64,000 nucleotides of DNA from Octopus bimaculoides. Lineage: Eukaryota. How positions within the stretch are numbered: the first letter of the stretch is position 1; every line of letters begins with the position of its first letter. Positions 13,124-64,000 of this stretch are shown here, one piece after another. The translations under genes were made by a program, and so were the position numbers. The notes below the pieces were generated by a model. It saw only the letters and a program-made list of their open reading frames with translations. It did not search any database and had not been told where the DNA came from. The stretch is from contig NC_068998.1 of NCBI RefSeq assembly GCF_001194135.2, positions 28,056,753-28,120,752 on the forward strand, read 5' to 3'.

Positions 13124-13179
<56 letters not shown>

Positions 13180-14579: not shown

Positions 14580-14616
<37 letters not shown>

Positions 14617-19315: not shown

Positions 19316-19366
<51 letters not shown>

Positions 19367-22300
19367 AGCTATGCCATTTTAATACTGAGCAATGCTGGGT
19401 ATCTCTGCTAGTCTAAAATACAAAAATGAAAAAAAAGAAAATAATAGACATAATCATCCTTGATACATCTGCCTATATTCTGAATTGTTCCAAGTGCCAA
19501 AAGCACAATACTCTTGTTTTGAAAATCTGAAAATTATCCCCCCATTGACACTGGGAGACAAAATGACCTCAAAGAGGATTATAGGAAGACCGAACATATT
19601 CAACTGAAACACAATCTCACCCACTTCAAAATAACTTCTACACTAAATTCTGAATGAAAATATTCTGGTCTAAAAGGTAAATCAAGTTTCCATTATATAC
19701 ATTTTTTCACCCAATCCAAATGATTTCAACTAAGTTTACAATACTAACAAAAATAATCTCAAATCTGTTCTCATTTCTTCTAATCAACTATTATTTCACA
19801 TTTCTTTACATTTTCTGTTTTTTTAATGTTATTAAATTATACCTCACTTGTTTACTATTGTCAAATTCACAGGCCCAAATGATGTGCAAACTACCACTAG
19901 CAACAATTTGGCTGAAGATTAGCTCTAATTCTAATGAAATACCGGGGAGGAGAATAATAGAAGTTCACAGTGGTAAGCTCTGTCACAGTGAAAAGGGAAA
20001 CCAATTACAACAGCATTTTCATTCAAAACTGTTGAACTGAAACCATATTGAACCTGTCTGATATCAATCAGTAGGATTCACTAGACTGTCAGTCATGTGT
20101 ATATCAGATTTGTAAAACAAGAAAACTGAGTTCTGACGTTTTGTGCAGGCTCTTATCTTGTTTTACATACTGAAGAGTAAATTGTTTATATATCAAATGT
20201 TTAGCTCAAAGTTATCTATAAAGTTGACATACAATGTAAATCTAAGCCACATGACATCATAGCACTTGATAGATTTATTACTAACTAGTGATACAAATCA
20301 ACTATTTCACAATAACCAAGTCATAAATGCTATGTTATTTAGTATTGAGGTTGCTAACTACTCGACTACCAAACCAAATAGTAATCAAATTACATGGAGA
20401 TCTATATAGAGAGGAATAAGCTTTGATAAAGTTATAAAATATTAGAACTACAAAGGCAGAGAAGTGAACAAGACAGGAAGCATGTTTTCTTCAAAATTAG
20501 ACAAAAACAAAATATACCTACTTTAAAGAAGCTAAGTAACGAGCAGCAGGTGAATTTCTAGCAATGCTACCAGCTGGAGATATATGGTCTGTAGTAACAG
20601 AGTCTCCAAAATTCATAAGGACATAGGCATTTTTAATGGATTCAATAACAGGTAGTTCCTTAGTCTGGAAAAAAAAGTTGTTAAAATATAATCCTGAAAT
20701 TCTGTAAAGTTTAAAATTAATAATTTTCAAAAAACAATCAAAATCGAACGAAATTCGACGACTGGCACCCATGCCAACCTTTCCTTCATTGGACACTAAA
20801 CCCTGCTTGTGAAGACATGTTGGGCAAGTGAAATCGAAATTGTAATTGAACCAAATTCGATGACTGGCACCTGTACCAGTGGAGTGCTAACAGCACCGTC
20901 CGATCGTGATCATTGCCAGAGCAGCTGTCTGGCTTCTGTGCCGGTGGCATGTAAATAGTACCATTTGAGTGTGTTTGTTACCAGTGTCGCCTTACTGGAA
21001 CTTGTGCCGGTGATATGTGAAAAAACATTCGAGCGAGGTTGTTGCCAGTGCCGCTGGACTGGCTTCTGTGCAGGTGGCATGTAAAAAACACCATTTGAGC
21101 GTGGCCATTGCCAGTACTGCCTGACTGGCCCTCGTGCCGGTGGCACATAAAAGCACCCACTACACTCTTGGAGTAGTTGGCATTAGGAAGGGCATCCAAC
21201 TGTAGAAACTCTGCCAGATCAAATTGGAGCCTGGTGCAGCCATCTGGTTCATCAGTCCTCAGTCAAATCGTCCAACCCATGCTAGCATAGAAAGCGGATG
21301 TTAAACGATGATGATGATGAATCGAAACATTTTCATTGACAGAATCCAATCCAAATTATCTACATCATAACATGGTCTGTAAGCAACATTCAGTATTCAA
21401 AATAATCAAAGTCAGTCTCTTAATTTCTTCTTCTTGCAATATCGCTAATAGTATGGCTATTACTATTATAAAGGAAAGGGTGATTTAAAAGAATACCCAA
21501 GCTGTTTAATATTAAAGGAACAGTTGATTTATAGAAAGTTATGCTGTATGCATAATGTGAAGCTGGAATACAATGAGATTAATTCTTTTCTGTTTAAAAG
21601 CACAGTTAATAGAGATCTGAATTTAAGAAACTTTCCTTCGATCCATTTAAGTTTGTAAGGCTAATCACCTATTGAAAAATATATCTGATTATGAGGAATC
21701 TAAAACTGATTTTCACACACACATAACTCAAAATATATATAAGTTTTGAGAAGATAATTGTGAACACATCTATCATAGGGTAATTTTATAATTTCAATGC
21801 ATATAGATAAAAATTATAACGTACCATGTTATCAAAAAATGGAGGGGATTTAATGTATGATGACCTTGGATCCCAAGGGTACAATAAATCATCAGGTGTA
21901 GCAAGTTTATTCCAACGTTCATTACCAGTCTAAAATTGAAACAAAATGTAAGATTGGTTTTAATATAACAAACTTAACAGGTTAAAAAACATTATCTAGT
22001 TTTTAGAAAACATGGGTATATGCAAACAAAGGAACAAAGAGTAATAAACATTATTTGAAAAAAAAAAAAAAAGGAAACAAAAACTTTACAAATTATGTAT
22101 ATATAAATAATTTATTGTGTTTTGTTGCTATTTTTTAAATGTCTCTATTATAAATATTTGAAGTTTGCCTATCAAAGTTTACTTATATGGAAGTACACAA
22201 CAAAAGTTTTTTGAGTACTGACTTGTATCAACAAAATAATCTATAAGTAAGCAAAAGATTAGTAGTGATTCCACTGCAAGTAGGCAGTGCACCCAAACAC

Positions 22301-45925: not shown

Positions 45926-48900
45926 CAGGCTTCTTTCAGTTTCTGTCTACTAAATCCACTCACAAAGCTTTGGTTGGCCCGAGGCTATAGTAGAAGACAC
46001 TTGCCCAAGATGCCACGCAGTGGGACTGAACCTGGAATCACGTGGTTGGTAAGCAAGCTACTTACCACACAGCCACTCTTGTAGAGTACATACTTTTTTT
46101 TTTTCAAAATATTCCCAGCTTTAGATGCATGACCAGAAATTATATCTATTGCAGAAGTCAACCGATGTGTAATAATGTTGCGTTTTACTATTATATTGAT
46201 AATATGTTGGTTTTATATTTTGGTACAAACCCAGTAATTTCATGGGGACAGGGAAGTCGATTACATCAACCCCAGCGCCTAACTGGTACTTATTTGTCCC
46301 CAAAAGGATGAAAGGCAAAGAAGACCTTGACGGAATTTGAACTCAGAACATAAAAATGGACGAAATGCCTCTAAGCATTTTGCCTGGTGTGTTAACAATT
46401 CCACCATCTTGCTGCCTTATTGTATTGATAATATATTATATTAAATGTTCATTATATTTAGAGTCAACATAATTTATGTCTCATGAAATTAATATACAGA
46501 ACACTGGATGGAGTTTTTAAGAAGTTTTTTTACTTCATGAAAATTTAAAATGCTGTGCTTCAGCTAATTAAGATTCTGATTTTGAAATAAATATTTTCAA
46601 ATTGGAAAAAAATTGTTGGCAGATCTTGTGCTTAACAGTAAAAAATGAAATTTTAAAAAAAGTAGAGTGTTTTTAAAAAAATGCCTACTTAAATGATACT
46701 TTTTCGTTCTTGGACACGCCATGCATGCATTACTCAACACACTGAATAGCAACATTGAGTAAAACCTTATGCGCCCCCACCACCATCATTGTTTTAATGG
46801 TTACTTTTCTATATTTACAAGGGACAGACAAAACTTGTCAAATCAGATTCTTCTACAGTTGGATGTTCTTCTTGTTACAAACCTGCATCTCTTTCAGTAT
46901 AAGGTAATATTTCCCCCAGTCCTCCGAACATACTTTCACAGAAGATTGTAAACAAAAGGCACTGTTTATGAAGTGGTGACTTTTGTTTACAACTAGCATG
47001 CATGTATCAAGACAAAGAGAACATAAAAACACATATGTTGGGCTTCTTACAGTTTCCTTTCACCAAACCCCACTCACAAGGCAATGATCACCCCATGGCT
47101 ACCACACAAAGGATATGAATCCTAAACCTAAACCATGTGGTTCTGAAGTGAATTTTTTAAAAACACAGCCATGCCTACATTATCTATATAAATAAAATTG
47201 ATTTTCTTGACAGATCAAGTGTTTTTTGCAATGTTAACTTTTATAGCTGATTCACTTTTACAGCCTTTTACAGTTCAAAGGTCACTTCTGAATTTATTTT
47301 GTTTTGTTTAGAGATGTAAACATTTTCAATGTATTTTAGGTATTTTAGGCAGCAATTATATATATCTGACTGTTTTTCCTTAAATTATAAAACTGAAGAA
47401 AAATTTGTGCATAATTTACATGAGAGCTATTGTTTACTAATAATTACTGTGCACATAATATCTCTATATTTGCTTGTTCGTTTGCACATTATACATTAGT
47501 TAGTTAGAGAGGTGGAGGTGGAGTGAGAGAGAGAGATGAGTGAAGAAAGAAGAGGAAGAAGTGAAGAAAGGTGATTAATATTAATACACTTAGGCCAAAT
47601 GGCCATATGGTCAGCTGAAGGTAGAGGCGAAGAAAGAGAGAAAAAGAGGGAGAGAGAAGTGTTAACAATGTACAGTGGGGTGGGGAAGGAATACTTATTA
47701 TGTGGTTAAAAAGTTAGAAGGGAAAGGTAGATAGAGAGAGATGGATAGGGGAGGCAGTTATATTGAGAGAGAGAAAGATAGATAGTGATGGTGGTGGTGT
47801 GTAGATAGTGAAAAGTATCTTTTTATTGAACTAATTTTTTTTTATAGTGACCATCGCAATTATTTATTGCCTGCTCACTTAAAAAATTGATATTTGTTTA
47901 TAAGGGTTAATTTAGCCTAAACTCTGGATTCACATGAAACACGGTTGCAGGCAGCCTGAGAAAAGATGCACAGATATAGAGCATGGAACAGAGTGGAACA
48001 GCAAGAAAATATAATAAAAAAAAAAGGAAAAGGACAACACCGACGGAGACGTAAGGGAATGATGTAGACAAACAGCAAGAATATATAAAGAAAGCTAAAC
48101 TACGAATGCTATAAAAATGCAAATTATCCTTTCTTTCTTAAATAGGTCCTCTAAAGTTTTTCCATTCCAAGGAATTTCCAGGAGTCCCACTAATATGAAT
48201 AAATATAAGTATATCTGCCAGAATGAAAGCAAATAAGAGGAATGTATACCTTCAAAAATCGAAATCTTTCTTCGTTCCTTTCAAATTCACGAATTTCATT
48301 TTGTTGGAGAGCATCTGAACTAAAACACAAATAAAATAAAATTGTAAGTTAAATACTTATCTATTAGATAAAATTAATAAAGGAATTTTATCATCAATGA
48401 AAAATCTGTCTCTGGGACTAAATTCTAAAAAAATACAATAAAAATATCAAAATAGATAAATAAATATATAAATAAACAGAAGTATCTAGGGTGAAAAACA
48501 AACTACATAAGATAAGCAGAGTTAGATCTGGATGTTTTCTCTTGGAGATACATTTTCTTTTGAAAACTATTTTAATGTCCATGTTTCAGTGTTATGGCTT
48601 GCTGGGTCTGCAAAATCAAAAAAGGTGCTTTTTACAGCTAAAAATTCTTGATAATGCCAACCTCTCATTGAAATGGGTCTGCTTTGTATTCTCCAGCTCT
48701 GTATATTGAAATAAATATTAGTGCTATATAAAACTGAATAAATTATAAGCATAACATTATAACTTGCCCAGTTTAAGAACATCCTATATCTTGATGTTGG
48801 ACATGGGAAATAATTTTAACCTAATTATAACTACTTTGCTACTAAGTGATGGTAAGCCCAATCTAGATGCCAAGCAACAACAATTCCCCCCCACTTTACT

Positions 48901-51900
48901 AATGGCTCTTAGCTTCTATTTTAAAAGCAATGATTCAACAGATGAGATTCCTGTTAAATATAGGGAATTCAGAGAAGAACACATCACTGACAGATACAAT
49001 CAAAGGCCTATGGTTATAAGTAAAAGGATCTCTAAGGCTAAACATTATTAAAAGGGCTACACCAATTAATTAGCAGATGATCAATATTGTTATGTTGGTG
49101 TGTTTATGTCCTCATAACTCAGTGGTTCAGCAAAAGAGGGCAATAAAATAAGTACTAGGTTTACAAAGAATAAGTCCTGGAGTTGATTTCTTCAACTAAA
49201 ACCCAGCATGGCCACAGTCAAATGGCTGAAACGTGTAAAAGAAAAAAAAAATATATATATATATATTTATCAAGAACGACATTCTCAGAATAGTATTTTT
49301 GGTTTGGGATATTGTAGCTGGAAGTAATCTTTATAAGTAAGTTTGAAAATTCCAACTCAAACACAACAGGATATGACTGCATGTCAACAGTGATCAGTTT
49401 TTGAATCAAATAATATGTATCATTGATGATCATTGATGTCCTATATCTTTTTTTCCTTTCTTGTATTTCAGTTAAAGTAGTTTGTGTTTTGGCAAGAGGC
49501 ATATCTGTTACTGATGAATATCCAGCATCTGTGGTTTTCCTCTTCATTTTACCAATTTCTTTTGACAATTCATCAGTATGGAACATTTTTAAGATGATTA
49601 GATGTTGTGAAAGTTTTAGCTTTTTATCCTCCTGTATAATATTGCAGAAAGTGAACTTTCGTGGAAAATTTTTTGAAGTATACAGAAGTAAACGATACTT
49701 TCTGCAATGTTTCCATATCGAGAGAGAAAAACATAATATACAGAAGTTTGACCGTGCAAGGTGGCAAATTCAACACACACACACATCTTCACTCAACAAG
49801 TTATTCTGCACTACTACTTTGTTAGCTGCCAGGATCCCAAATTTGTCTATTTTGTGTAACAGGTGAGCTATGTAGAAAAATATATTTCCTGTGCTTACAT
49901 AAGTATGTTGAGTGATGGAAGTTGAAACTACCTGCCCACCTCCATTCAAAAGAGGAACAACCAATCAATGACTTCCTTTCTAACCAAGCTAGGAATTCCA
50001 CCTCTCTCAGGGATCCACTACTATACCATCCAGCTTTGGTTTGAGTCACAAATCCATAACTTGTGAGCACAAGAGGACGAAAAGACTAAATTTACAGAGC
50101 TAATAACTAATATGTTTATAACCACACTATGTGTTGCTTTTTGTGCTTTTCCTTTCCTCTTTTATTTTAGGCTTTATGCTAATATAACTTCTAAGACTAT
50201 ATATGTTGATTTTATGGTCACATAATGATTAAACAAATATGAGTCCTACATGCAGGTATAGAATGTAGAATGTATTACATACTGAGGGTTGCATCAGTGA
50301 ACTACATGGTTCAATGGCAATAAAATATAGAAACCTTGGTAAGATCAACCTAATTCTTTCATATACTCTTATACAGTAACTCTGCAATAGTGATTAATTA
50401 TGAAATATTATAACATACGACATGCAATTAATTACACTATGAATTTTCATGTGACAATACTTAGTTACGTTATAAATGATTAGCCTCTAATTTACTGGTA
50501 TTGGCTAATAAAGCGAAGCCAATTAATTAATAATCAGCTATTTTGCTTATCAGTGGTACATCCCATTCTTTTATCATTAAAAATGTAACTTAACTTCTTA
50601 AAATATATTACAATTAAAAACTTCTTTAATTAAGAGTTGAGAAGAACAATGAATAGATTATGAAACTTATAATTACAGACTAGAACAGTTGTAGCAGAAA
50701 TAGCAATCCCATGCTGGTGGCACGTAAAAAGCACCATTCAAGCATGGTTGATGCCAGTACTGCCTAACTGGCCCTCGTGCTGGTGGCACGTAAAAAGCAC
50801 CCACTACACTCTCGGAGTGGTTGGCGTTAGGAAGGGCATCCAGCTGTAGAAACTTTGCCAGATCAGATTGGAGTCTGGTGAAGCCTTCTGGCTTGCCATC
50901 CCTCAGTCAAACCGTCCAACCCATACCAGCATGGAAAGCGGACGTTAAATGATGACGACAATGATGATGAAATTATGCAATAATCATATCAATAATATTT
51001 GGCTAACTGAAAAGAAATTATTGTAAAAAATAAAAACAAAAAAATTCCCATTAACTTCATTTTTACAGGTATATAAAATATGCAAAGTGTTATAAAAGTG
51101 GTTTACATTACAAACCAAGTTAAATGCCATAATTAGAATAGAACTATTGAGATGACTGGGCATGGCTGTTTGGACATTCAGTTTGTTTTAGTAAGGGAGG
51201 TAAACACATACACAATGAATGTGCATAGAAATACGCACATACAGATATAGACATTACACATTCATAACTAGATGCTCACAAACATATTAAAATGACACGT
51301 CAGATAAGTCACCATCGAATCAGCAACATCAAATAGGCAGCACCAAAATCGTCATACCAAAACATCTCATGTCCACATCATGTATATATCTTATTGCATA
51401 CAGACATTGAAATATTGTGTTAAGCTGCTTGTTTATATTTTGATGTCTGTGTGTAAATCTGTAAATTCAGTCTGCTGCAAGAAGAACATAAGATGCAAAA
51501 ATTAAATTTAAATAGAATCTATTCTCTCATGTTCTTTGATATTTTCCCAATCAGTTTAACTCCCATCCAAAATTAGAACTTCAACATCTAAAAGACTTGA
51601 AATTAAAATCAAACCCAGTAGAATGTAAGCTAAATTAGTCATTTGCTTTGGCAGCATAAGTAATAGAAACATAACTTCAATGAAAATGAGGCTCTAAAAA
51701 TAAGCAGGAATAGCGAATATAGAATTGACAAAAGATAAATACCACCAGAAATTATAACAAAAATATTCTGTGATAATATCTGTATAACATCTTTGATATT
51801 ATGATAAAATGACTAAATAATTTGATTTAAAACACTGGACATGCATTCAAAAAGGAAAAGAAACGAATAGGCATACAATTAACACTTTAGAAATATGGAA

Positions 51901-54900
51901 AGAAAAATGAGTATAACAATCCTTCAGATTAAATATTATTTTCTTTATACCAGCTCTATTGTATAGAATCACTTCCATAATTATGGTCATATGGCATCAT
52001 ATGAACTACTTTATTAGACACTTAGAAAACTACCAACCATTATTTTTTTTCATCAGCTTATATATATATATTTTCAGTGGGTTTGTTAGCAATACTAAAT
52101 AACCATGACATTCAATCACCACTGACTACCTTACACTCAACATATTCAAGGTAAGTGCTCATTATTTCAATACCCACCAAAAAAAAAAAAAGAAAAGAAA
52201 AAAAGAAAACCTATGTCACTACTCAATTTGCTCCAGCAAATAAAAGCAACCACATAGGTTAAATAATAACCAGATCTCTCTCAAATAGTACACACTCATC
52301 TTAAAAAAAGGAAGAATACAACAGACAGTATAATTCTAAATACATCTTGAAAATCAGATGGGATGGTCATGGCTGAAATGCTCTGATCACAGGTCTGCTC
52401 AATAAGGGCAAATCTGGTGTTAAATAACATCAGCCATTTTATGCTATATTGATATATTTTTTTTATTGCCTGTAGATAAGAAAATAATCTACCTCCAAAA
52501 TACAAAACAACAACCTAAAACCTCACTAGACAATCTTGATTTCACTAAAACTCACTACTACTGTAATATAACTATTCAACTCAGGTCAGTGTCCTTAGAA
52601 ACACAATAAAAATAGAAATGATGACAAAGTGAACAGATAGTGATAACTAAACTTGTATATTCAAAAACAAAAACAAAACACACTTCCCCTTTCTTCAGTT
52701 GATTAGGCCTATCAGATGACTGACTAAATTACTCTACTTCTAGCTTGAATGACTTCAAGATAAGATCCACTGTCTTCTGGCTTCACCAATAAAAACAGCT
52801 GAACTCAACACTACAAACTAATGAGTAACTTGTCGATTTTAGTGCTGCCACTTCTAACAATAGTGAGTTCTTTTTACTCTAAAGTATCTACTTTCAGCTG
52901 AATGGATAGCATCATTTGAGAACCATATGTTTTCACCAAAGAAAATATACAGTGCTGGTAATAAGAGATGAAGTGCCAACCCTCAGAAGATAGTTATCCC
53001 ACCAACTCAGTTAGCCAGGATTTCTTATAGAAAAAAAAAAAAAGAACAGAACTCTAGCTGAAATGTTCACATTTACAGATGTTACACTATAAGTGTATAT
53101 AATATACATACAGAAAAGCCTTAGGAGTCTAAATAGAAAAAATACTCAGTTAATGTAAAATCTAACAAATTTAAATAAATATAATAAAATAAACTTGAAG
53201 CTAAATTATGATGCTCAGCTCAATCCATAATTTAAACATTCAATCTTTGCTACAAGCAATGTAATGTTTCAGCTAAGCAGCTTATATGAAAATACAGTAT
53301 CATATATGAAAATTTTATGTGAGGGAGAGAGGTTTGGCACAAAAATCTTGCAGCAACAATATAAGCAAATAGTAGAAGAGAAAGACATATTAAAGACAGT
53401 TTTGAAGGCTACTAATTAAAAACATATTAAGTTAGTGTATAACAAAACATTAGGTCAACTTTGATTGAGCAGACCTACGATTAATGGCATTCCAGCTGTG
53501 ACCATCCTGTCTATTAAGGGTTACTGAGGACTACATTGTTCAATGTGCCCTTCCCTTTTAAGATAATAGGTGTGATTTGAGGGAAAATTTGGCTGCTATT
53601 TCTAGCAAGTAAACCAGCTGTAAAGAGGTTCCCTCATAGGCTCAACAATAGCAAAATATTACTGCAAAGGTTATTTTTTAACCTTCTAATAAATGTAATT
53701 AAACAATATCAATAATTTATAACTTTATTATTGTTATAATGTACAAATTAAAACAAAAATACCCAATGTTTCTATGATACTATTTTATCAAGAATTTCAG
53801 ACTTGAATCTAATCCAAGATTTCAGTATTCAACAGTCAAAGTGCTTCTTCACTGATCTCAGAGGTACATGCATTCTTGCCATAGATAATGAACAGTGAAC
53901 AGTTACAGTTTCATTGTTTGTGGTTTATTCCAAGAACACTTTTACATCTAGATTAACTCTCTGCTTAACTTGTAGTCATTTGCAACAAAATAACATAATA
54001 GTTTTAAATGTTTTGAATATGTGACAACATAACTCTAAAATCCATATTGAAAACCCTACAAAAGTCTAGATTTAACATGTTACTAACACAATAGCACAAA
54101 CTATTACTCGCAGCAAGACTGTAAGATGTTTATGTTGGACAGGTACTATTATGGAACCAACTGTCTTACCCATTAGAATAGTGGTAGACAGTCTCCTGAC
54201 TTGAGCCACTGCTGCCACAGCTGGTTTTGCCACCGCCTGGGTTGGGGGAATACCATGTAATGCTGCAATGAAATAACATGCAACAGGAATAGGATGGTGA
54301 AGCCCATCAATGGAAAATAAATAAAATAAAGATAAAGGATGCATAAGTCTGAAATAAAACAATATTCTTTTGACAGAACTGTAAAAAAAATAACTGACAA
54401 CCTAAGAAGAAAAAAGCAGAAAAAGTCAACAGAAGAAAAAAATACTTGGTTTCATATAAGTTTTACATGTATTGAAGTATATAGAAATTCAGATACAGTA
54501 ATCCCTCGTCCATCGCTAGTGTTACGTTACAAAATAGGTGAAAATCCACAAAGTACTGTACATTTTTTAAAACTAATTTTTATAATTTGTATATATTTAT
54601 TGTATTATAAATGCAAAACACCACCACAGAGGAATCAATGATAGGTGAACCACGACATAGTGAGGGATTACTGTATACAAGAATTGTGCAGCATCTGAAA
54701 GACATAATTGGTATCTATTACCCATCCTCTAATTATAGCTGAAACATTAAATATTTCATTCACAAATAATTTACAAGTTCAACAAGTCTCATGTTCTCTC
54801 AATGGCAGTTGAAAATTTATATATTTAAATAGAGATTGATGTCCATGTGACTCCTACCCAGATATTCAAGTTGTCATTAAACATGATTTCATTACGGCTC

Positions 54901-56768
54901 ACATTGTCCAAGAAAGGATTTTAATCAAACTTCAAAAATGTTCTCACACCCATGAACATCTCTTTTACACTTAGAATTCTCTTTCATTCACTTTCCAATT
55001 AGAACTTAAAACATACAATACTCTAAACCAAAACCTAGTTGCATTATCAGTATGATCTTTAAATAGTTTCTAGGAATATGAAGGCCATTCTAAATATTGT
55101 ACCAATGTACATGATGCCAAATAGTGAGCATCTTTAATATACTTAGCTTCAATGAGTTTGGTTGCATGATTTTTTTAGTTTCCACATTTTGAAGATCTTT
55201 ATACTGTAACCACAGATACACAAAGGAGAGCAACCATTCAGTATTGACAAATAATATCCTTTGGAAGGTTATATTAATTAAATGAATGACAAACAACAGG
55301 TGATCACATGTGTGTGNNNNNNNNNNNNNNNNNNNNNNNNNNNNNNNNNNNNNNNNNNNNNNNNNNNNNNNNNNNNNNNNNNNNNNNNNNNNNNNNNNNN
55401 NNNNNNNNNNNNNNNNCACACCACAACTGATGCTTCTTAGGTTCAACTTTTCTCTCAAGTTACTTAAAGTCTGTCGAGTATGCACACTGACATTACACAT
55501 CCAGCAGAGCATACTGGCTTCATTCCTTGCAAGCTCACACATGTCCTCAGCAGTCACGGCCCATGTTTCACTGCCATGGCTGTTCATACACATGCGTCAT
55601 ACAGTCTGCCTTTTACTTTGAGTGAGAAGCCCTTTGTTACCAGCAGAGGTAAGAGCTCTCTGAACTTTGCTCAGGCTATTCTTATTCTAGCAGCTACACT
55701 TTCAGTGCACCTTCCCCCACTACTAACTTGGTCACCTAGATAGCGGAAGCTATCAACTACATCTAGTTTTTCTTCCTGGAATGTGGCAGAAGTTGTTTTT
55801 TCCACATTTTCAGTGTTTATTGCTCCTGAACATCTGCCACATACAAAGACTAACTTCCTAGTTAACCTTCCTTTAATATTGCTGCACCTCTTTATGTGTC
55901 CATAGCTTACACTGGGTACATCTTATAGAGTTTCTACCTATGCCTTTTCTACAGATCGAGCAGGGCCATCTACCTGAAGGGGTTTGTGTTTTGTCTACCT
56001 TTCTAATTATTAGGACTTTGGTTTTAGCTAGGTTGACTCTAAGGCCCTTCGATTCTAGTCCTTGCTTCCACACCTGAAACTTCTCCTCTAGTTCTGATAG
56101 TGACTCAGTAATTAGTGCAAGATCATCAGCATAGAGGAGCTCCCAGGGGCATCCTGTCTTGAATTCCTCTGTTATTGCCTGGAGGACTATGATAAATAGG
56201 AGGGGGCTGAGGACCGAACCTTGGTGGACCCCTACCTTTACCTGGAATTCTTCACTGTACTCGTTGCCAACCCTCACCTTACTGACAGCGTCCCTGTACA
56301 TGGCTCGCACAGCTCTCACTAACCATTCTTCTATCCCAAGTTTCCTCATTGACCACCAGATAAGGGATCGGGGCACCCTGTCAACAAAAGCCAGGTACAG
56401 AGGTTTATCTTTGGCTAGGTATTTTTCCTGCAGCTGTCTTACCAGAAATATAGCATCAGTGGTGCTTTTCCCTGGCACGAACCCAAACTGCATCTAATCT
56501 AAACTGACTCTCTCTCTAGGGCCTCTCACTCAGAGTAAAAGGCAGACTGTATGATGCATGTGTACGAACAACCATGCTACATGGCAGATCGAGCAGGGCC
56601 ATCTACCTGAAGGGGTTTTAGCTAGGTTGACTCTAAGGCCCTTTGATTCTATTCCTTGCTTCCACAGCTGAAACTTCTCCTCTAGTTCTGATAGTGACTC
56701 AGCAATTAGAGCAAGGTCATCAGCATAGAGGAGTTCCCAGGGGCAAATATATGATATATATATATATG

Positions 56769-56822
<54 letters not shown>

Positions 56823-57310
56823 CATTGAAGAGTTTCCTATATTTATGATTATTTGGAAAGTGCTTATCTATAAGAGACAAGAAATATTTACCAATATAAA
56901 AAGTGACTTTGGGGGAGAAAGGGAGTGTAAACCAGATAATTTTCCTGTGTCTATGTTTTCTTTTCTTTATTTTCTGATCAATAACAGGGGTATAAGCTAT
57001 TTTATTTTTTTCACAGCATCTATCATCAAAAATAGCCTATTAAAATGCCCCGAAGCTTCTAGCTCCACCATTTGAAACTGAGTCCTCTTATGACAACTTA
57101 CTGATTATCTTATTCTATATATAAATATATATATAAATTCCTCTAGTTTCATAATATCGAGGTTTCATTTTTTTTTTGTCATTTTATTGTTATACATATA
57201 TGTGTATATATATAAAGAAGAATTTATATATATATATATATGAGAGCACATATATATGTATATACTCACACACACACATATATACATACATACATATATA
57301 TTCATGTATA

Positions 57311-57396
<86 letters not shown>

Positions 57397-60300
57397 GTAC
57401 TTGCAAACAGGTAGAGAGGATGGAGGTCGGCTGCAGAGTTAAAGGTCATCATACAAAATACAGGAAAGAACAAAATGGAAAAAAAAATAGATGACAGAAG
57501 GAGAAATAGCCTGAAGGACTATAGAGATTTTCATGAACAGTAGAGACAATAGAAAAACAGAGAAAAGAAGAAGCTTCAGTAAGAGAAAGAGTCATAACAA
57601 GAGTAAAGAATACAAAGAGCATACACAGACACACAATTAAGTAATGCACACAAAAATGTGACAAAAAGAAAGAAGGGATTGGTAGAGAAAGGAAGGGAGA
57701 GCAATATGCACACACACACACACACATGCTCTTAAATGCACAAACAGTGAAGGTCAAACACTGGAACATGCTCATACATAGGAGGCGAGGAAGGAAATTC
57801 TAGATGCAAAAGCAGAAATCTGAGGGAAACAGGAGATAAAGAGCAGTATTAAAATATCCTTTATTTTAAGCCAGGGTAAGAGAGGAGATCCCAGGTCAAA
57901 TAAAAGAGCATTGATTGTGTCTACTGAGAGTGAACAAGATACAGTACCGGATCAATCTATAGATAGCAATAGTAATGGAATGAATGATTCGATTGATGTC
58001 TGTCTATTAGTTTTAAGACATTCCAGCTGTTGTCTCATAAATCAAAACTGTCTCCATAAGTTTGTTCAATAAAGAAGTAGACAATAGATAATAAATAATA
58101 CAGTTAATATGACAATGCAAAAAAGTATCATTAATTATTGATTAATATTTTTTCCTTTTATCATCTCCTATACAAATATATGTTCTGACCATTAAATATG
58201 CCATTCACAAAACTATTCTAATTATCCAGTGAATAATATTAATGTGTGATTCATTTGAAACTCTGAGTACTCTTATGACAACTTACTGATTGTCTTATAC
58301 TATATATATATACATATATATATATATATAAATTCCTCTATTTTCATAATATCGAGGTTTCATTCTTTTGTTGTCATTTTATTGTTATTAATTAATATAT
58401 TCCATATGGTGCAGTAATGATGGACTTGTTCTATCATTTACTATGATCCACTAATATAATTCTATGTTGCAATGGTTCTACTTCTAAAAGATCAACCATA
58501 TTTTAACTTTTAGTTAAAATATTAGGTCATTTCCTGTCCAAATCAGTAAGGTTATTTCTTACCTTAACCCTTTAGTGTTCAGATTACTCAGTTAAATGTA
58601 ATACTTTTTCACTTAAATTGTTTTGAATTAACTATGCATTATCTTATAGCTTTGAAGTTTCAGTGAGGTAATTGTTTATTTTTAGAATGTCAGTGTAGGT
58701 TAGGTGTGAGAGGCTAGATATCGCCAGTTTGAATATAAAACATGTAGAATATATTGGGGCGGATATGGCTGGTTTAAACACTAAAGGGTTAAATACACTA
58801 TGGATCTGCATCACAAATCTACCTCTCTTACAAAACAATGTCACACACTATTCTCTACATCAAATCACATTCCTAAAGAATATCTTATTATGTAACTACT
58901 GCAGTTTATTATACATTAACACTTCAGTATATTCAATAGAGTAGTAGCTGACATATATCATCATCATCATCATCATCGTTTAACGTCCGCTTTCCATGCT
59001 AGCATGGATTGGACGATTTGACTGAGGACTGGTGAACCAGATGGCTGCACCAGGCTCCAATCTGATCTGGCAGAGTTTCTACAGCTGGATGCCCTTCNNN
59101 NNNNNNNTCTGATCTGGCAGAGTTTCTACAGCTGGATGCCCTTCCTAACGCCAACCACTCCGAGAGTGTAGTGGGTGCTTTTACGTGCCACCAGCATGAA
59201 GGCCAGTCATGCGGTACTGGCAACGGCCACGCTCAAAATGGTGCATTTTATGTCCCACCTACAGAGGAGCCAGTCCAGCAGCACTGGCAACGATCTCACT
59301 CGAATGTCTTTACACGTGCCACCGGCACAAGTGCCAGGAAGGCGACGCTGCGCACAGGTGCCATCACAATTTCGCTTTCACTTGCCCCAACNNNNNNNNN
59401 NNNNNNNNNNNNNNNNNNNNNNNNNNNNNNNNNNNNNNNNNNNNNNNNNNNNNNNNNNNNNNNNNNNNNNNNNNNNNNNNNNNNNNNNNNNNNNNNNNNN
59501 NNNNNNNNNNNNNNNNNNNNNNNNNNNNNNNNNNNNNNNNNNNNNNNNNNNNNNNNNNNNNNNNNNNNNNNNNNNNNNNNNNNNNNNNNNNNNNNTCGAT
59601 TTCGAATTCACTTGCCTCAACAGGACTTCGCAAGTGGAGTTTAGTGTCCAATGAAGGAAAGTACACATAAGTGGGCTGGCTACCCCCCTGGCAGAGGCCT
59701 TGGATTTAGGTCTCACTTAGCTTGCTGGGTCTTCTCACGCACAGCATATTTCCAAAGGTCTCAGTCAGAAGTCATCGCCTCGGTGAGGCCCAATGTTCGA
59801 AGGTCTTGCCTCACCACCTCATCCCAGGTCTTCCTGGGCCTGCCTCTTCTACAGGTTCCCGCAACTGCTAGGGTGTGGCACTTTTTCACACAGCTATCCT
59901 CATCCATTCTCGCCACATGACCATACCAGCACAATCGTCTCTCTTGCACACCACAACTGATGCTTCTTAGGTTCAATTTTTCTCTGAAGGTACTTACACT
60001 CTGTCTAGTATGCACGCTGACATTACACATCCTGCAATCGTATTGTTCAAACTAAGTAATTTTGAATTTTGTATCAACTGACAAAATCAGTTGTGACACC
60101 AAAATGTCACTGGCTCCAGTCTGTGTCAAAATAGAAACCTAATATCCACCTTATTGCTCTTCTTAGATCTTTGGCTTTCATCATCTTCATTTCCACATTA
60201 TATAAAACAGTAATTAAGATTTAACACAACAAATTAATCTATACTCATTATCAGTTTTATTCATGCTTAGCTACTACAAACTTTGGCAATCTGATTAAAT

Positions 60301-62988
60301 AAAGAGAATATTTCTATTGCATCAGCTAAACCCATCCTTGCAGAACCGACATTCCTTGTAATTAAAAAACATAATTAGTCCCAACACAAATACAGAAGAG
60401 GGTTTTCAATGACACTGATCAAACTTAAACCCACTTCTATATAACCACTCCTTACTAACTCATTTATATTTAGCTGTGTGTGTGTGTGTGTTGATGTGTG
60501 TGCCTGTGCCTGTGTGCATGCAAGTGTAAAAAACCCTGTAAAAATACTTTCTCACAAAGCCTGGCTGTAACCAAGCTTAATTTGTCAGTTTTCCATTCAT
60601 AAAACTTGATGGCAATGTTACCATATGAGAAAGCCATATTTTTTATCATTGTTTTTTTTAATGTCTTCTTTGGTCACTCCTGTCACACATCACTACTTGG
60701 ACAAAATATATTCCCAATACATTAATTTACAATACTGTCACTACTTTGAATAATTTACTGTAGAAATTCAAGAACAGTCTGCAATCCCAGCCCCTTTTTC
60801 TATTGGTTTGTAAAAGTGATTCTAACAAAAAAGAAACAGAAAACCTTCAACTTAAGAATGTTCTTTTAATACATAAACAAAGAATGTCTATAAATCTTTG
60901 AGCAGTTTCAGTTTAACGTTTTGTTTTAAATCATAAACATATATTAACTAATACAACACATAATGTTCATCACAAGTGTACATTACTTGAAATAATTTCT
61001 GTTAAATTTTACTGATAAATATTCTTCACAAATCAAAACTGGTGAAATAAAATTAATTTACATCTATACCTTTAGATAAACTTTGTAGATTAGCTGTGAA
61101 GGTGAATAATTTTAAATAATGAAACAAAGCAAATCTGAATAGGTAGACTATTTCAAGTGGTTACTTTTACAATTGTGAAAGGTTGGCCAGTTAAACCAAT
61201 TATGAAAGTAGTTAGATTAACAAAGTACAGCAGAATGGATTCAAGTCAAATTTGAACATGCACCCATTTGATCAGAAGCATAGCATCTTAACTTCGACCA
61301 TTGTGTTTCACATGATTTTCAGACATTTGCTCAGTTTATATATAAGTGAATACCTATTTAATACTAACAACTGTAAAATTATAGTGGAACCTATTTGTCA
61401 GCCAATCTGACAGAAGAAACAGAGTTGTGTCTTAAGATCCGCAACACAATTCAACTTAGAGGTTTGTGGTCTTTAAATCCTAAACTACTGCACTTCTTAC
61501 GTAAAAAGAATTCTTTTAAAAATTATTCAACCTATATTCTGCTTAGCTGGTGAGTAAATGATAAAAAGTTGCACCAAGCTAAAGCACATTTAATTATAAA
61601 CTACTCAAGTTTCTAAATATTAACAGTTAGACTAATTAGAAAATCGACTTTAAAATTTATAGAATTTTGGATGTTGCTCAAATGAAAGGGATTGTGTAGT
61701 ATTCTTTTCTTTGAGATAATTGAAAATTATCATTAAATTTTAACAAGAAATCAGAAAATGTTTTGTGCCCACTTAAAAATAGAGGATAGATCCAATGAAC
61801 ATTTTACAAAATATGAGAGAGAGAGAGTGAGAGAGAGAGAGAGANNNNNNNNNNGAGAGTGAGAGAGAGAGAGAGTGAGAGAGAGAGAGAGTGAGAGAGA
61901 GAGACAGACAGACAGAAAGAGAGAGATTTGAAGGAATAATTGGTTAATGAAATTTAACAGAGGGATGAAGTTTCTGAATATATTCTAAGATATAAGGTGT
62001 CAAGTTCTTGTTAAATCTAGAAAATTAAAACAAAACATTTTTTCTTTTTTCATTTTATCTGTATTAGAACACAGGGTATCTCACAACGTACATCTAACCA
62101 CAAACACAAAGTCTTTACAAACCAACAAGGGAGCCTCTTCATGATCACTCAACCTCCTAGCAATCGTCCTTAAATCACACTTGACTGTCTTAATAAATGA
62201 CATGGTGGATAAAGAGAGCCTTGAGAGCCTTGCACACAGGACACAGACAGGATAGTCACAGTTGGAAAGCTTCTGGTCATAGGGCTGCTCAATCCAAGCT
62301 GACCTGTGGCCAATAAACAACCAAGTCTTTAACACTTTAGCATTTATCATTCCAACCATACAATGTCACTCTAAAAATAAACAATCACTTCATCGAAATC
62401 TCCAAAGCTACAAGATAATACATGATTCATTCGAAACAATGTGGATAAATAAGCATTGCATTTAACAGAGTAATCTGAATCCTCAAGGGTTAAAACAGTT
62501 CTATGACAATTACTAACAATAAATTTCACCATTTAGGAGTCAGGAGACAAAGTTTATAAAATGAGAAACATTCAGACCTAATTATTTAGGCATTGTTGAT
62601 GCTCTCAATCTAAAATGCTTAATGAGATTTTTCATACATACACACATACACACAGCAATACTTAGAATAGAGAAATTTTTTTTAAATATATTGGTGCAAC
62701 AGAATGGCTTAAATAAAATATTTAGAAATTAAAAATTTTAGCAACCTGAGTTCATGTAAAAGAATCTATAAAAAGATTTAAAGAGTGTAAGCAATGTGAC
62801 CAATAATTTATTTGTAATTCTACTGGAAGAAAGTGCTAGGATATATTTACCTTCTGGAAACATCCACTTGTACTGAGTGATCAATGACAAGATCAGCAGG
62901 ACACACAGGGTTTATTTTAGCTGGATCACCACCCAACCGCTTGACCACATCTCGCATGGCTGCGAAGTCAACAACAGCAGGGACACCA
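9800..62988 (-). CDS. ACO1: Cytosolic aconitate hydratase / iron regulatory protein 1 family gene, 5'-partial, 19 constitutive coding exons in window
   Basis: Spliced translation gives [73 protein letters not shown] and ends [12 protein letters not shown]. All introns are GT-AG and phases match; exon lengths sum to 2401 nt. Confidence 0.98.
10292..10477 (-). CDS. ACO1: ACO1 coding exon, 186 nt ([28 protein letters not shown]...KPQLTTTVE)
   Basis: Acceptor acatctAG, donor GAA/gtaagt. Confidence 0.97.
10732..10777 (-). ncRNA. Putative minimal type I hammerhead ribozyme motif
   Basis: GACAC-CTGATGA-A-GGCTG..CAACC-GAAA-CG-TT-GTGTT: intact core boxes, stem I GACAC/GTGTT, stem II with one mismatch, palindromic AACGTT in place of stem III. 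Confidence 0.55.
10950..11312 (+). mobile_element. 5'-truncated R4/Dong-like (restriction-like endonuclease) non-LTR element 3' end
   Basis: [42 protein letters not shown] plus a 3'UTR, flanked on both sides by (TAA)n. Confidence 0.7.
12958..13412 (+). mobile_element. tRNA-headed SINE with internal (TA)n
   Basis: A-box-like TGGCTGTGTGG and B-box-like GGTTCAGTCCC; multiple copies in the window. Confidence 0.85.
13928..14050 (-). CDS. ACO1: ACO1 coding exon, 123 nt ([41 protein letters not shown])
   Basis: Acceptor cttcttcAG, donor CTG/gtaagt; [10 protein letters not shown] motif. Confidence 0.97.
14445..14940. repeat. ~500-bp near-perfect palindrome of two back-to-back tRNA-derived heads with (TAA)n spacers and Penelope-like terminal arms
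   Basis: The left and right arms are reverse complements around the centre at about 14700-14710. GTGTAGTGG (A box) and GAGTTCGATTC (B box) are present. Confidence 0.9.
16296..17041 (-). mobile_element. Internally deleted mariner transposon
   Basis: TIRs CGAGGTGGTATCGAAAAT / ATTTTGATACCACCTCA with TA flanks. Relic N-terminus [26 protein letters not shown] and C-terminus GDYFEGD. Confidence 0.9.
17195..17342 (-). CDS. ACO1: ACO1 coding exon, 148 nt ([50 protein letters not shown])
   Basis: Acceptor tttcctAG, donor ACA/gtaagt. Confidence 0.97.
17756..19411 (+). mobile_element. Non-autonomous Helitron
   Basis: A/TCTATATATATAAAA 5' end; GCAATGCTGGGT..GCTAG/T 3' end; internal 69-bp tandem encoding ESQExRxMxL..RHA repeats. 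Confidence 0.65.
20522..20664 (-). CDS. ACO1: ACO1 coding exon, 143 nt ([47 protein letters not shown])
   Basis: Acceptor tttccAG, donor AA/gtaggt; TTDHISPAG motif. Confidence 0.97.
20790..21320 (+). repeat. RTE 3'UTR/tail repeat with ~55-60-bp minisatellite
   Basis: Several GGTGGCATGTAAAAA..ACCATTTGAGCGTGG units followed by the conserved block and (GAT)n. Confidence 0.8.
21825..21929 (-). CDS. ACO1: ACO1 coding exon, 105 nt ([35 protein letters not shown])
   Basis: Acceptor aattttAG, donor ATG/gtacgt. Confidence 0.96.
24573..24792. mobile_element. TTAA-flanked MITE (piggyBac-like), same family as 58568-58788
   Basis: TTAA at both ends; the interior is the reverse complement of the 58568 copy. 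Confidence 0.65.
25187..25246 (-). CDS. ACO1: ACO1 coding exon, 60 nt ([20 protein letters not shown])
   Basis: Acceptor cttttAG, donor ACA/gtaagt; VIPxMFKEVY motif. Confidence 0.95.
26346..26410 (-). CDS. ACO1: ACO1 coding exon, 65 nt ([22 protein letters not shown])
   Basis: Acceptor ttcatAG, donor CAG/gtgatt; LKDIWP motif. Confidence 0.95.
26905..27061 (-). CDS. ACO1: ACO1 coding exon, 157 nt ([52 protein letters not shown])
   Basis: Acceptor ttcacAG, donor G/gtaatt. Confidence 0.97.
27275..27359 (-). CDS. ACO1: ACO1 coding exon, 85 nt ([28 protein letters not shown]); second and third 4Fe-4S Cys ligands
   Basis: Acceptor ttttcAG, donor AAG/gtttgt; GCxTCIG motif. Confidence 0.97.
27496..27631 (-). 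CDS. ACO1: ACO1 coding exon, 136 nt ([46 protein letters not shown])
   Basis: Poly-T acceptor ...taaAG, donor GG/gtaagc. Confidence 0.97.
27849..27996 (-). CDS. ACO1: ACO1 coding exon, 148 nt (GFQIPP...[25 protein letters not shown]); first 4Fe-4S Cys ligand
   Basis: Acceptor ttttgcAG, donor G/gttagt; TSCTN motif. Confidence 0.97.
29485..29613 (-). CDS. ACO1: ACO1 coding exon, 129 nt ([43 protein letters not shown])
   Basis: Acceptor taaacAG, donor AAG/gtaaa; CCSGPKRP motif. Confidence 0.95.
30646..31887 (+). mobile_element. Near full-length mariner (DD34D-type) with pseudogenised transposase
   Basis: TA plus TIR CAAGGGGCAGTCAAAAG and a degenerate right TIR. Relic motifs VTPDET, LHDNA, [12 protein letters not shown]; many stops. 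Confidence 0.88.
32005..32105 (-). CDS. ACO1: ACO1 coding exon, 101 nt ([34 protein letters not shown])
   Basis: Acceptor pyrimidine tract ending tttAG, donor GAT/gtaagt; phases 1 and 0 fit the neighbours. Confidence 0.93.
32852..33023 (-). CDS. ACO1: ACO1 coding exon, 172 nt ([57 protein letters not shown])
   Basis: Acceptor tctgtctAG, donor A/gtaaga. Confidence 0.97.
35088..35227 (-). CDS. ACO1: ACO1 coding exon, 140 nt ([47 protein letters not shown])
   Basis: Acceptor ttattttAG, donor AAG/gtaatt. Confidence 0.97.
35721..36152 (+). mobile_element. tRNA-headed SINE with long internal (TA)n
   Basis: Same family as 12958-13412. Confidence 0.85.
39010..39225 (-). mobile_element. Second tRNA-SINE family (other copies about 5735-6080, 25950-26130, 37540-37800, 46215-46420)
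   Basis: GAGTTCAAATTCC B box and a TTGTCTTTCATCCTTTTGGGGTTGATAAAATAAGTA core resembling the Deu/Nin conserved SINE domain (recalled). Confidence 0.7.
39700..40700 (-). mobile_element. Old CR1/L2-like RT relic
   Basis: Degenerate LDIS..LL.K and VQSTL.YC-type segments on the minus strand. Confidence 0.45.
41637..41820 (-). CDS. ACO1: ACO1 coding exon, 184 nt ([26 protein letters not shown]...[17 protein letters not shown])
   Basis: Acceptor ttttcAG, donor G/gtaagt; conserved motifs. Confidence 0.97.
42833..43890 (-). mobile_element. RTE LINE 3' portion with UTR minisatellite and tail
   Basis: ORF2 C-terminal relic homologous to 55420-55870 and 59650-60035, then the shared tail. Confidence 0.8.
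44495..44830. repeat. Tandem repeat of ~38 bp (AACATCATGGTATTTAGTACAGGTACCAGCATCCAGTC) around the N-gap 44544-44721
   Basis: Units are visible after the gap; both gap flanks repeat the same ~49 bp. Confidence 0.7.
44835..45355 (+). mobile_element. Tc1/mariner-superfamily (maT/DD37D-like) transposase 3' fragment with right TIR
   Basis: [41 protein letters not shown]; ends CACCCTG plus TA. Confidence 0.75.
45664..46078 (-). mobile_element. tRNA-headed SINE with internal (TA)n
   Basis: Reverse complement of the 12958-13412 family. Confidence 0.85.
48250..48319 (-). CDS. ACO1: ACO1 coding exon, 70 nt ([23 protein letters not shown])
   Basis: Acceptor tgttttAG, donor AAG/gtatac. Matches IRP1 ADSLQKNQDLEFERNRERFEFLK. 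Confidence 0.95.
50705..50970 (+). repeat. RTE-tail repeat copy
   Basis: GGTGGCACGTAAAAAGCAC units, the conserved block and GGACGTTAAATGATG tail. Confidence 0.8.
54170..54262 (-). CDS. ACO1: Putative cassette exon, 93 nt, IRP2-insertion-like ([32 protein letters not shown])
   Basis: Acceptor ttatttcattgcAG, donor GG/gtaaga, phase 2-2, no stops. PNPGGG matches the start of the vertebrate IRP2 insertion in the same register. Confidence 0.85.
54496..54673. mobile_element. Tigger/pogo-like MITE, 178 bp
   Basis: TIRs CAGTAATCCCTC / GAGGGATTACTG with TA duplication. Confidence 0.85.
55417..56530 (-). mobile_element. RTE-clade LINE RT fragment (206-aa open frame at 55873-56493)
   Basis: [35 protein letters not shown]; lacks LEKAFD relative to the 1640-2610 copy. 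Confidence 0.92.
58568..58788. mobile_element. piggyBac-like MITE, 221 bp
   Basis: TTAA-CCCTTTAGTGTT ... AACACTAAAGGG-TTAA. Confidence 0.85.
58958..60035 (-). mobile_element. RTE LINE 3' end (ORF2 C-terminus, UTR, tail) interrupted by N-gaps 59098-59107 and 59392-59595
   Basis: [25 protein letters not shown], then UTR units and the (GAT)n tail. Confidence 0.85.
62851..62988 (-). CDS. ACO1: ACO1 coding exon, 138 nt ([45 protein letters not shown])
   Basis: Acceptor ttttctAG, donor AG/gtaaat, phase 2-2. Confidence 0.97.
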
Positions 62989-63656
62989 CTAGAAAAATTA
63001 TACATATAAATGTATGTATATTTCATGCTAAAATTATAAATACATATACATACATACATATGGTTCAAATGTACAGAAAATAAAAGACAGAGAAAGGTGA
63101 GGGAACAATAGGCAGTTGTATTAGTTTGATGCTTGGGAAAAATGGAAAAGTCTTTGCCATTTAAAGCCTATGCTCTTCAACAGAAAGGGACAAGGAAAAA
63201 AAATGGAGAGAGAGAAAAAAATGTATTGGGATTGGTGTGTGTGTGTGTGTCTGTGCACACGTGCAAAAATTTGCAACTTCTTACTTGTAAATAAAAGTTT
63301 CTGATATCTTCAACAACTTTATTGTAATACATATGTTTCAAATAACATTGTATATATTTTTGTGTGGTGTATTAAAATCAAAGTATCAACTATATGTTGT
63401 TTTGATTTGTAGAACAGCCCTTATTCCATACTTGTATTAGTATTTTGTTGCTTTTTTAAAACTGTTTTATTGTATTTGTTTTATTTAACAGGTGGAAGTC
63501 CTTTTCTTTTTTCACCTAACAAATCAATAATGAAAAAGAAGTGCCTGCTGCGCTGCCCGATACAGAACTGAGGCCAGGTGAGTTATGTGCTTTACCCAAG
63601 AAAACATCATTATGATTGTAATATAATCAGTTTTGAATTTCTTGTGCATCTTGAAA

Positions 63657-64000
63657 TCTATATATATAAAAATGAGAATGTGTGTCTGTCTGTCTGTCTG
63701 TGTGAATCCCTAAAACTCGAGAACTACGCAACCAATTTCATTCAAATTTTACAGATGCTTTACTTAGGGTTCCAGTTGTGTTTTAGTCAAAAAAAATTTT
63801 TAACTTCTTGCAGAGTTTGAGCACACGGCAACATAATATCTCCTCCACTATTTAAGTATTACGTGTCAAAAGTGAAACAAAAACACTCATGTCAAATACT
63901 TTCACTTTAAAAATGAAACTATTCCACTAACTGAAACAATCACATTTCGATACTGTAATGACAGATACTTTCAGAGAGAGAGAGAGAGAGAGAGAGATGT
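63657..64000 (+). mobile_element. Probable Helitron 5' end
   Basis: A/TCTATATATATAAAA followed by (TGTC)n; similar to the start at 17756. Confidence 0.5.

Follow-up and report, generated by a model that had tools for sequence, protein, structure and literature searches.

A 64,000-nucleotide stretch of the Octopus bimaculoides genome (RefSeq assembly GCF_001194135.2, contig NC_068998.1, positions 28,056,753–28,120,752; called the window below, its own coordinates being used throughout) carries on its minus strand part of a gene for a cytoplasmic aconitase of the iron regulatory protein 1 (IRP1) type. In one of its introns lies a 93-nt segment, at positions 54170–54262, which is very probably a genuine, regulated, frame-preserving alternative exon of this single-copy IRP1-like gene, descended from an ancient metazoan cassette exon. 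The peptide that it encodes appears to be the counterpart of the 73-residue insertion of vertebrate IRP2, which reviews describe as the feature separating IRP2 from IRP1, IRP2 itself being ascribed to a late duplication “in higher eukaryotes” (PMC3048577). The insertion would go back to an alternative exon long present in the one IRP gene of invertebrates, which revises the picture of an IRP2-specific domain. Its two best-conserved pieces are the motif PNPGGG and the heme-binding motif CPFH, and octopus uses a truncated form of it at very different levels among samples. The sequence of the exon was already known; the novelty lies in recognising it as the equivalent of the IRP2 insertion, and that insertion as an ancient, widely retained alternative exon.

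The alternative exon and its splicing

The features are given below. X20 is the sequencing run of the most divergent of four further octopus species compared with the window.

54170–54262, minus strand: alternative cassette exon, 93 nt, phase 2-2 (sequence; RNA-seq reads and contigs with both junctions)
54263–54301, minus strand: 3' splice site, AG at 54263–54264, and pyrimidine-rich intron flank; no listed substitutions in run X20
54128–54169, minus strand: 5' splice site GTAAGA, GT at 54168–54169, and conserved downstream intron flank; none listed in X20
62851–62988, minus strand: upstream constitutive exon with a phase-2 end (sequence; RNA depth and contigs bounded at 62851–62988)
48250–48319, minus strand: downstream constitutive exon (sequence; its first bases form the loose end of the cassette-spanning and skip contigs)
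48320–62850, minus strand: cassette-bearing intron of 14,531 nt, with no second, CPFH-coding cassette inside
9803–62988, minus strand: in-window part of the cytoplasmic aconitase/IRP1-like gene, residues ~99–928 of XP_052830568.1 (tblastn with E. coli AcnA and with the octopus protein)

On the minus strand the cassette reads ttcattgcAG/CATTACATGG...TCTAATGG/gtaaga (a slash marks an exon boundary) and, with longer flanks, ...ttatttcattgcAG/CATTACATGGTATTCCCCCAACCCAGGCGGTGGC...CACTATTCTAATGG/gtaagacag. The upstream exon, whose full extent was corrected to 62851–62988, ends at 62851 with ...GTG GAT GTT TCC AGA AG/gtaaat, and the downstream exon starts at 48319 with ag/T TCA GAT GCT; the phase is 2 at all three junctions. 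The 31 residues encoded by the cassette are identical to residues 144–174 of XP_052830568.1, a protein that the window exons match. An initial annotation of the window, made from the sequence alone, had described a stop-free 93-nt segment with canonical splice sites and phase 2-2, skippable in frame and located 8.6 kb into a 14.5-kb intron; all of this was borne out, the measured length of the intron being 14,531 nt. The exons for residues 1–98 were not found in the window by an N-terminal search and lie outside it, upstream of position 64000.

Canonical sites and an open frame are not special in themselves, because the intron holds 448 frame-preserving, stop-free segments of 45–300 nt between an AG and a GT. 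The motif PNPGGG, which is expected 1.1e-5 times in this intron, was seen once in the three sense frames, inside the cassette. A crude filter for pseudo-exons with strong sites threw out the real exon too and was hence uninformative.

The reality of the exon was settled by RNA reads: it is spliced into mRNA exactly at the two predicted junctions, with the skipped form alongside. In the raw RNA-seq data of three runs (organism D), coverage was confined to 54170–54264, and the unaligned read ends matched, in reverse complement, the end of the upstream exon (GATCACTCAGTACAAGTGGATGTTTCCAGA) and the start of the downstream exon (TTCAGATGCTCTCCAACAAAATGAAATTC). RNA contigs from four further organisms (A, B, C and E) agreed with this block and with both junctions. 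At position 62851 the assembly graph forked, one branch being a skip unitig of 59 nt and the other an inclusion unitig of 152 nt. The unitig depths gave rough figures for inclusion, calculated as the inclusion depth divided by the sum of the inclusion and skip depths:

Run X5: inclusion depth 43.8, skip depth 147.6; approximate inclusion 0.23
Run X6: inclusion depth 201.2, skip depth 134.8; approximate inclusion 0.60
Run X7: inclusion depth 60.5, skip depth 116.7; approximate inclusion 0.34
Run X8: inclusion depth 150.3, skip depth 75.5; approximate inclusion 0.67
Run X25: no inclusion form assembled, the skip form being an unbranched 3,080-nt contig of depth 40.7 that runs straight into the downstream exon; inclusion not detected

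Raw-read depths in runs X21–X23 (about 16/27, 16/53 and 12.5/43) corresponded to inclusion of about 0.6, 0.3 and 0.3, and a 75-nt reference meant to show the loose ends at the junctions yielded depth only. That inclusion varies so widely within one study speaks for a regulated cassette rather than for noise.

DNA contigs of the four further octopus species were compared over positions 53950–54500. Run X20 showed 39 substitutions and 52 gap letters over 546 nt. Twenty of its listed changes fell within 54010–54127, none within 54128–54169, two in the exon, none within 54263–54301, and many past 54302. Both changes in the exon replaced a residue (G>D and S>T) and left the reading frame and PNPGGG intact; a third species had a single synonymous change in the exon. 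Regulated alternative exons are commonly recognised by such conservation, which here takes in the exon and about 40 nt of the intron to either side. The initial annotation had considered that its reading would fall if no tissue gave inclusion reads and related cephalopods conserved neither PNPGGG nor the splice sites; inclusion reads were found, and the X20 species keeps both the motif and the sites. A Logan transcript (P0122), presumably from another cephalopod, which clusters with octopus in a quick neighbour-joining tree, has a cassette that is shorter still, with 25 residues and related residues after PNPGGG. The reading frame, PNPGGG and a Ser/Gly-rich stretch with a Cys are common to both cassettes.

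The exon had been called hidden, which did not hold. A full-length search retrieved XP_052830568.1, the 928-residue “cytoplasmic aconitate hydratase isoform X2” of O. bimaculoides, in which the cassette is present. Among the RefSeq models XP_052830567.1, XP_052830568.1 and XP_052830569.1, the 31-residue segment is found in X1 (931 residues, with a different first exon) and X2 and is missing in X3 (900 residues), which differs from X1 by the exact deletion of these residues. The O. sinensis trio XP_029645810, XP_029645811 and XP_029645812 forms the same isoform set with an identical cassette. These octopus models are automated, and their names, cytoplasmic aconitate hydratase isoforms X1–3, give no link to IRP2. 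The alternative first coding exons of the octopus gene begin with MSSPCLQFEHISNQNPYA... in X1 and MASSNDEHVDQNPYA... in X2.

The insertion in other animals and in vertebrate IRP2

Invertebrates were surveyed through the best 120 matches of the full-length protein search. A 101-residue query spanning the three exons returned only short, cassette-free fragments, and the cassette alone returned no candidate (word index, 90% clustering). Many invertebrate IRP1-like proteins exceed the usual ~893 residues by 30–70 residues, owing to an insertion at this very junction. Among the 120 matches, more than 25 invertebrate species from six phyla carry it, most of them also with CPFH:

Bivalves: Mytilus, Pinctada, Mactra, Magallana, Potamilus, Solemya
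Chiton: Liolophura
Gastropods: Haliotis, Nucella, Babylonia, Batillaria, Lymnaea, Biomphalaria
Annelid: Paralvinella
Echinoderms: Asterias, Acanthaster, Diadema, Strongylocentrotus, Amphiura
Hemichordate: Glandiceps
Cephalochordate: Branchiostoma lanceolatum
Chelicerates: Ornithodoros, Centruroides
Crustaceans: Oratosquilla, Armadillidium, Portunus (grown to 230–310 residues)
Cnidarians: Nematostella, Porites (shorter form, DPGG...CPFH)

Among the groups that the initial annotation had named for comparison, the insertion was present at the same junction in molluscs, an annelid, echinoderms and amphioxus. The alignment of 21 insertions gave the consensus SxxxxxPNPGGG...CxxCxxSGxPxLDxxCPFHxxxTx, in which PGG is invariant and PNPGGG nearly so, as are invariant the C, P and H of CPFH. 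The insertions in the long isoforms of Magallana gigas (X1), B. lanceolatum (X1), Strongylocentrotus purpuratus (X1) and Nematostella vectensis (X1) begin like the octopus cassette, with five residues followed by PNPGGG (DPGG in Nematostella). Among the matches, insertion-free isoforms are annotated for five species: B. lanceolatum (X2), S. purpuratus (X2), Amphiura (X4), Ornithodoros (X3) and Nematostella (X2).

Mapping onto the genomes of amphioxus, oyster and Nematostella showed that the insertion is a single exon, located in the homologous intron and with phase 2 on entry and on exit, as in octopus. The splice sites of the upstream exon, the insertion exon and the downstream exon are, in order:

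Amphioxus: AG/gtaaga ... ttacAG/C ... GAT TG/gtactt ... accag/C
Oyster: AG/gtaaag ... tttcAG/T ... CAG GG/gttggt ... ccag/T
Nematostella: AA/gtgagt ... tctag/T ... AAA TG/gtgggc ... tcag/C

Several variants of the insertion were met in the survey. The enlarged crustacean insertions consist of about 230–310 Pro/Ser/Tyr-rich residues. In Oratosquilla these separate PNPGGG from CPFH; the Armadillidium insertion has the CPFH end only and that of Portunus a DPGGG-like start only. The heterobranch gastropods Lymnaea, Biomphalaria and Aplysia have long versions too. Two Batillaria models differ, the insertion of one ending with ...GAKVESEV and that of the other running on to CPFH, a hint that the cassette of some gastropods is in two parts or has an alternative donor inside it. 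In isoform X1 of the crinoid Anneissia japonica, the junction holds a five-residue insertion, SSTFS, probably the outcome of an alternative splice-site choice rather than of a cassette. Some fish IRP1 models (carp, Erpetoichthys, salmonids) show unrelated insertions of 19–26 residues at the junction, with neither PNPGGG nor CPFH; these appear to come from intron sequence or faulty modelling and not to be relics of the cassette. A scan for PNPGG-like motifs found none in the full homologous intron of two metagenome-derived animals (L001/L002), and none in the Elysia intron, of which a part falling short of the downstream exon was scanned.

Human IRP2 (PDB 6vcd_A, residues 121–150), with the sequence PTDLTVDHSLQIDFSKCAIQNAPNPGGGDL, gave a gap-free match to 30 octopus residues. 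The human sequence, the position and the five-residue spacing to PNPGGG, which the initial annotation had put forward, all proved correct in this alignment, where the IRP2 start CAIQNAPNPGGG pairs with that of octopus. The match scored 24.9 bits, mostly from the flank, with E = 2e-4 against the PDB alone. Amphioxus provided a longer alignment. Its insertion with flanks matched human IRP2 in one stretch over residues 121–233 (48.7 bits, E = 4.7e-12), and the same region matched the downstream flank only of IRP1, at 27 bits. With the whole amphioxus protein as the query, the match to IRP1 was interrupted at the insertion, giving two stretches, and that to IRP2 ran through it. Amphioxus IVRNTPNPGGG was paired with AIQNAPNPGGG of IRP2, and amphioxus ICPFHQQP with LCPFHLQP. 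Heme binding by the IRP2 peptide TPILCPFHL has been characterised experimentally, the dissociation constant (KD) being about 0.8 uM (PMC10377097, Table 1).

The features shared between the invertebrate insertions and that of IRP2 are therefore the junction and two motifs, one at each end, to which are added exon status and phase among invertebrates. The homology of the invertebrate insertions with the IRP2 insertion is well supported by these comparisons. A homologous insertion in many invertebrate IRP1-like genes implies that the domain predates the vertebrate IRP1/IRP2 duplication, as an alternative exon, which was the proposal of the initial annotation; the distribution places its origin further back, before the cnidarian–bilaterian split.

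The octopus form of the insertion

Like the octopus cassette, the 73-residue insertion of vertebrate IRP2 separates DHSxQxDxx[RK] from xDxLxxNQ in domain 1; it also has the five-residue spacing to PNPGGG and an exon of its own, and is predicted to be disordered. The two differ in length (31 residues in octopus versus 73) and in the centre, with a single Cys and no CxxC in octopus versus a Cys-rich stretch in IRP2; CPFH is missing from octopus, and inclusion is constitutive in IRP2 but optional in octopus, where the skip and inclusion forms coexist. The other invertebrate insertions, of 27–63 residues (up to about 280 in crustaceans), keep CxxC, present in most other phyla, and LPxLDxxCPFH; both have been lost in octopus and P0122. 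The octopus exon retains the first third, with the five residues, PNPGGG and a Ser/Gly-rich run containing a single Cys; its last residues are ...ETVYHYSNG. It is, to judge by its sequence, a truncated derivative, in which the “TVYH” may be a decayed CPFH remnant, given its spacing to the exon end. A stretch coding for CP[FY]H was sought in all sense frames of the 14.5-kb octopus intron and none was found, nor any second cassette. Heme sensing through CPFH is excluded for octopus, because the motif is missing, but not for most other invertebrates.

The rest of the octopus protein differs from IRP2. Both the Aconitase (PF00330) and the Aconitase_C (PF00694) domains are present, and the Fe-S cluster-binding motifs were recovered by tblastn with E. 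coli AcnA as the query. All columns that do not vary among 31 animal IRP1-like sequences are kept, with the three Fe-S cluster cysteines and the catalytic Asp, His, Ser and Arg positions among them: C477, C543, C546, D134/H135, D245–H247, N575/R576, R581 and S818–R820 (octopus numbering; their correspondence to human residue numbers is presumed). Octopus thus retains the residues of the aconitase active site and cluster, unlike IRP2, and the octopus gene is the pre-duplication orthologue of both IRP1 and IRP2. The proposal that one gene yields IRP1-like and IRP2-like isoforms stands in that both isoforms are real; the longer one is IRP2-like in its insertion only. In an AlphaFold2 model built from the 31-sequence alignment (mean predicted local distance difference test, pLDDT, of 76), residues 136–175 had a pLDDT below 50 and no secondary structure, the 10-residue blocks spanning 141–170 averaging 24–30. 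This segment, modelled as disordered, sits between a strand at 129–132 and a helix at 175–189. Inclusion of the cassette is thus predicted to give a protein that is of IRP1 type in all other respects a flexible loop at its surface.

Proposed origin and alternative explanations

We propose the following scenario. The ancestral cassette exon would have lain in the intron, and had the phase 2-2, in which it is found today in cnidarians, molluscs and amphioxus. Its product would have consisted of five residues and PNPGGG, a variable Cys-containing linker (CxxC) and LPxLDxxCPFH, the CPFH being the counterpart of the heme-binding motif of IRP2. In vertebrates, the cassette would have become the constitutive 73-residue exon of IRP2 and disappeared from IRP1. 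In octopus, the cephalopod descendant of this exon would have shrunk to 31 residues, PNPGGG and one Cys being kept and CxxC and CPFH lost. Its inclusion would create a disordered Gly/Ser/Pro-rich loop in domain 1, between the DHSxQxD strand and the next helix. We would guess that this loop modulates how stable the RNA-binding/aconitase switch is or how it binds its partners, with no heme sensing by CPFH.

The division of splice forms between paralogues after a duplication is a general model, exemplified by teleost mitf-a and mitf-b. The single gene with an optional exon resembles this model when set beside the two vertebrate genes, IRP2 always with the insertion and IRP1 never, and the natural reading would be that vertebrate IRP1 and IRP2 split the two splice forms after the duplication. 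IRP2 has changed in other ways too, having lost aconitase residues and gained control by FBXL5.

Several observations weigh against the proposed ancestry. Most of the isoforms outside octopus are automated gene models. A profile built from the insertions alone matched IRP2 in the PDB at the correct place (140–207) with E = 3.3, below the PGGG repeats of tau. It was rejected as stand-alone evidence, and since it is not significant the case for homology is carried by agreement in position, in phase and in two short motifs rather than by any long alignment. Phase was compared among invertebrates, and the status of the human IREB2 insertion as a separate exon was taken from the literature (PMC3048577). 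In the complete 10.5-kb homologous intron of the hemichordate Saccoglossus, no stretch coding for PNPGG, NPGGG or PGGG was found on the sense strand; the exon is therefore not universal. This intron lies at 11380–21860 of GL014267.1 in Saccoglossus kowalevskii, and the other hemichordate, Glandiceps, keeps the full insertion; a lineage-specific loss or strong divergence probably accounts for the difference. Lastly, with CxxC and CPFH lost, the octopus exon could be a decaying remnant.

This last point leads to the alternative that survives best, though it is unlikely: the exon would be homologous but functionless, tolerated as a disordered surface loop and included through splicing noise or drift. 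The loss of CxxC and CPFH, the predicted disorder of the peptide, the non-synonymous nature of both X20 substitutions and the even shorter cassette of P0122 are what such a relic would look like. Inclusion reaching 0.6–0.67 in some samples and undetected in another is not noise-like, however, and the conservation of the exon with ~40 nt of each flank, far better than that of the surrounding intron, is what regulated alternative exons commonly show; octopus and P0122 also have in common the frame, PNPGGG and the Cys-containing S/G-rich stretch. It is rather improbable that the inclusion isoform acts like IRP2, as an RNA-binding-only protein whose stability is set by iron, heme or oxygen through the insertion. 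The homology with the IRP2 insertion and the heme-binding CPFH of the other invertebrates would be in favour of such an action, but the octopus exon has neither CPFH nor CxxC and the protein keeps all Fe-S ligands and aconitase active-site residues. Chance or convergence, in which a lineage-specific exonisation happened to encode PNPGGG at the IRP2 offset, could draw on the short octopus–human match, the 448 open pseudo-exons and the non-significant profile, but is close to refuted by the rarity of the motif (1e-5 per intron), by its recurrence at the same offset, intron and phase in oyster and amphioxus (DPGG in Nematostella) and by its presence in more than 25 species of six phyla, most of which also share CPFH with IRP2.

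Descent from an ancient, regulated cassette exon is thus the explanation that we retain for the octopus segment. A wider version of it can be put forward tentatively. The “IRP2-specific” domain would have been, before the cnidarian–bilaterian split, a regulated optional exon with a heme/redox module (CxxC and CPFH); most invertebrates would toggle their single IRP gene between an IRP1 type and an IRP2 type by splicing, vertebrates would have fixed the two forms in two genes, and cephalopods would have lost the sensing half.

The function of the 73-residue insertion has been described as “not clear yet” (PMC4056636), and one report describes mutants without this stretch as still susceptible to iron-dependent degradation (PMC2267205). 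A sponge study described IRP1 homologues only and no IRP2 paralogue (PMC7034838), and an earthworm study considered that two IRPs had so far been described only in vertebrates. No description of an IRP2-type insertion or alternative exon in invertebrates was found in the open-access literature, the subscription journals being outside the search. The conservation reported here is an evolutionary argument that the 73-residue domain, notably its disputed heme motif, is functional, and makes its function testable in animals with one gene to manipulate. It would also be a clean example of splice forms divided between paralogues. If an ancient, splice-switched sensing exon is confirmed, the disputed function of the 73 residues could be studied in oyster, sea urchin, amphioxus and Nematostella.

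Two further observations concern the surroundings of the exon. Within positions 48000–63200, some element of the intron is similar to sequence that occurs mostly in human sequencing runs. A search for the pyruvate kinase gene (PKM) within the window found none. The O. vulgaris model CAI9736291.1 (1482 residues) is a fusion of the aconitase/IRP gene with pyruvate kinase, which draws PKM proteins into the 90% cluster and suggests that the two genes are neighbours.

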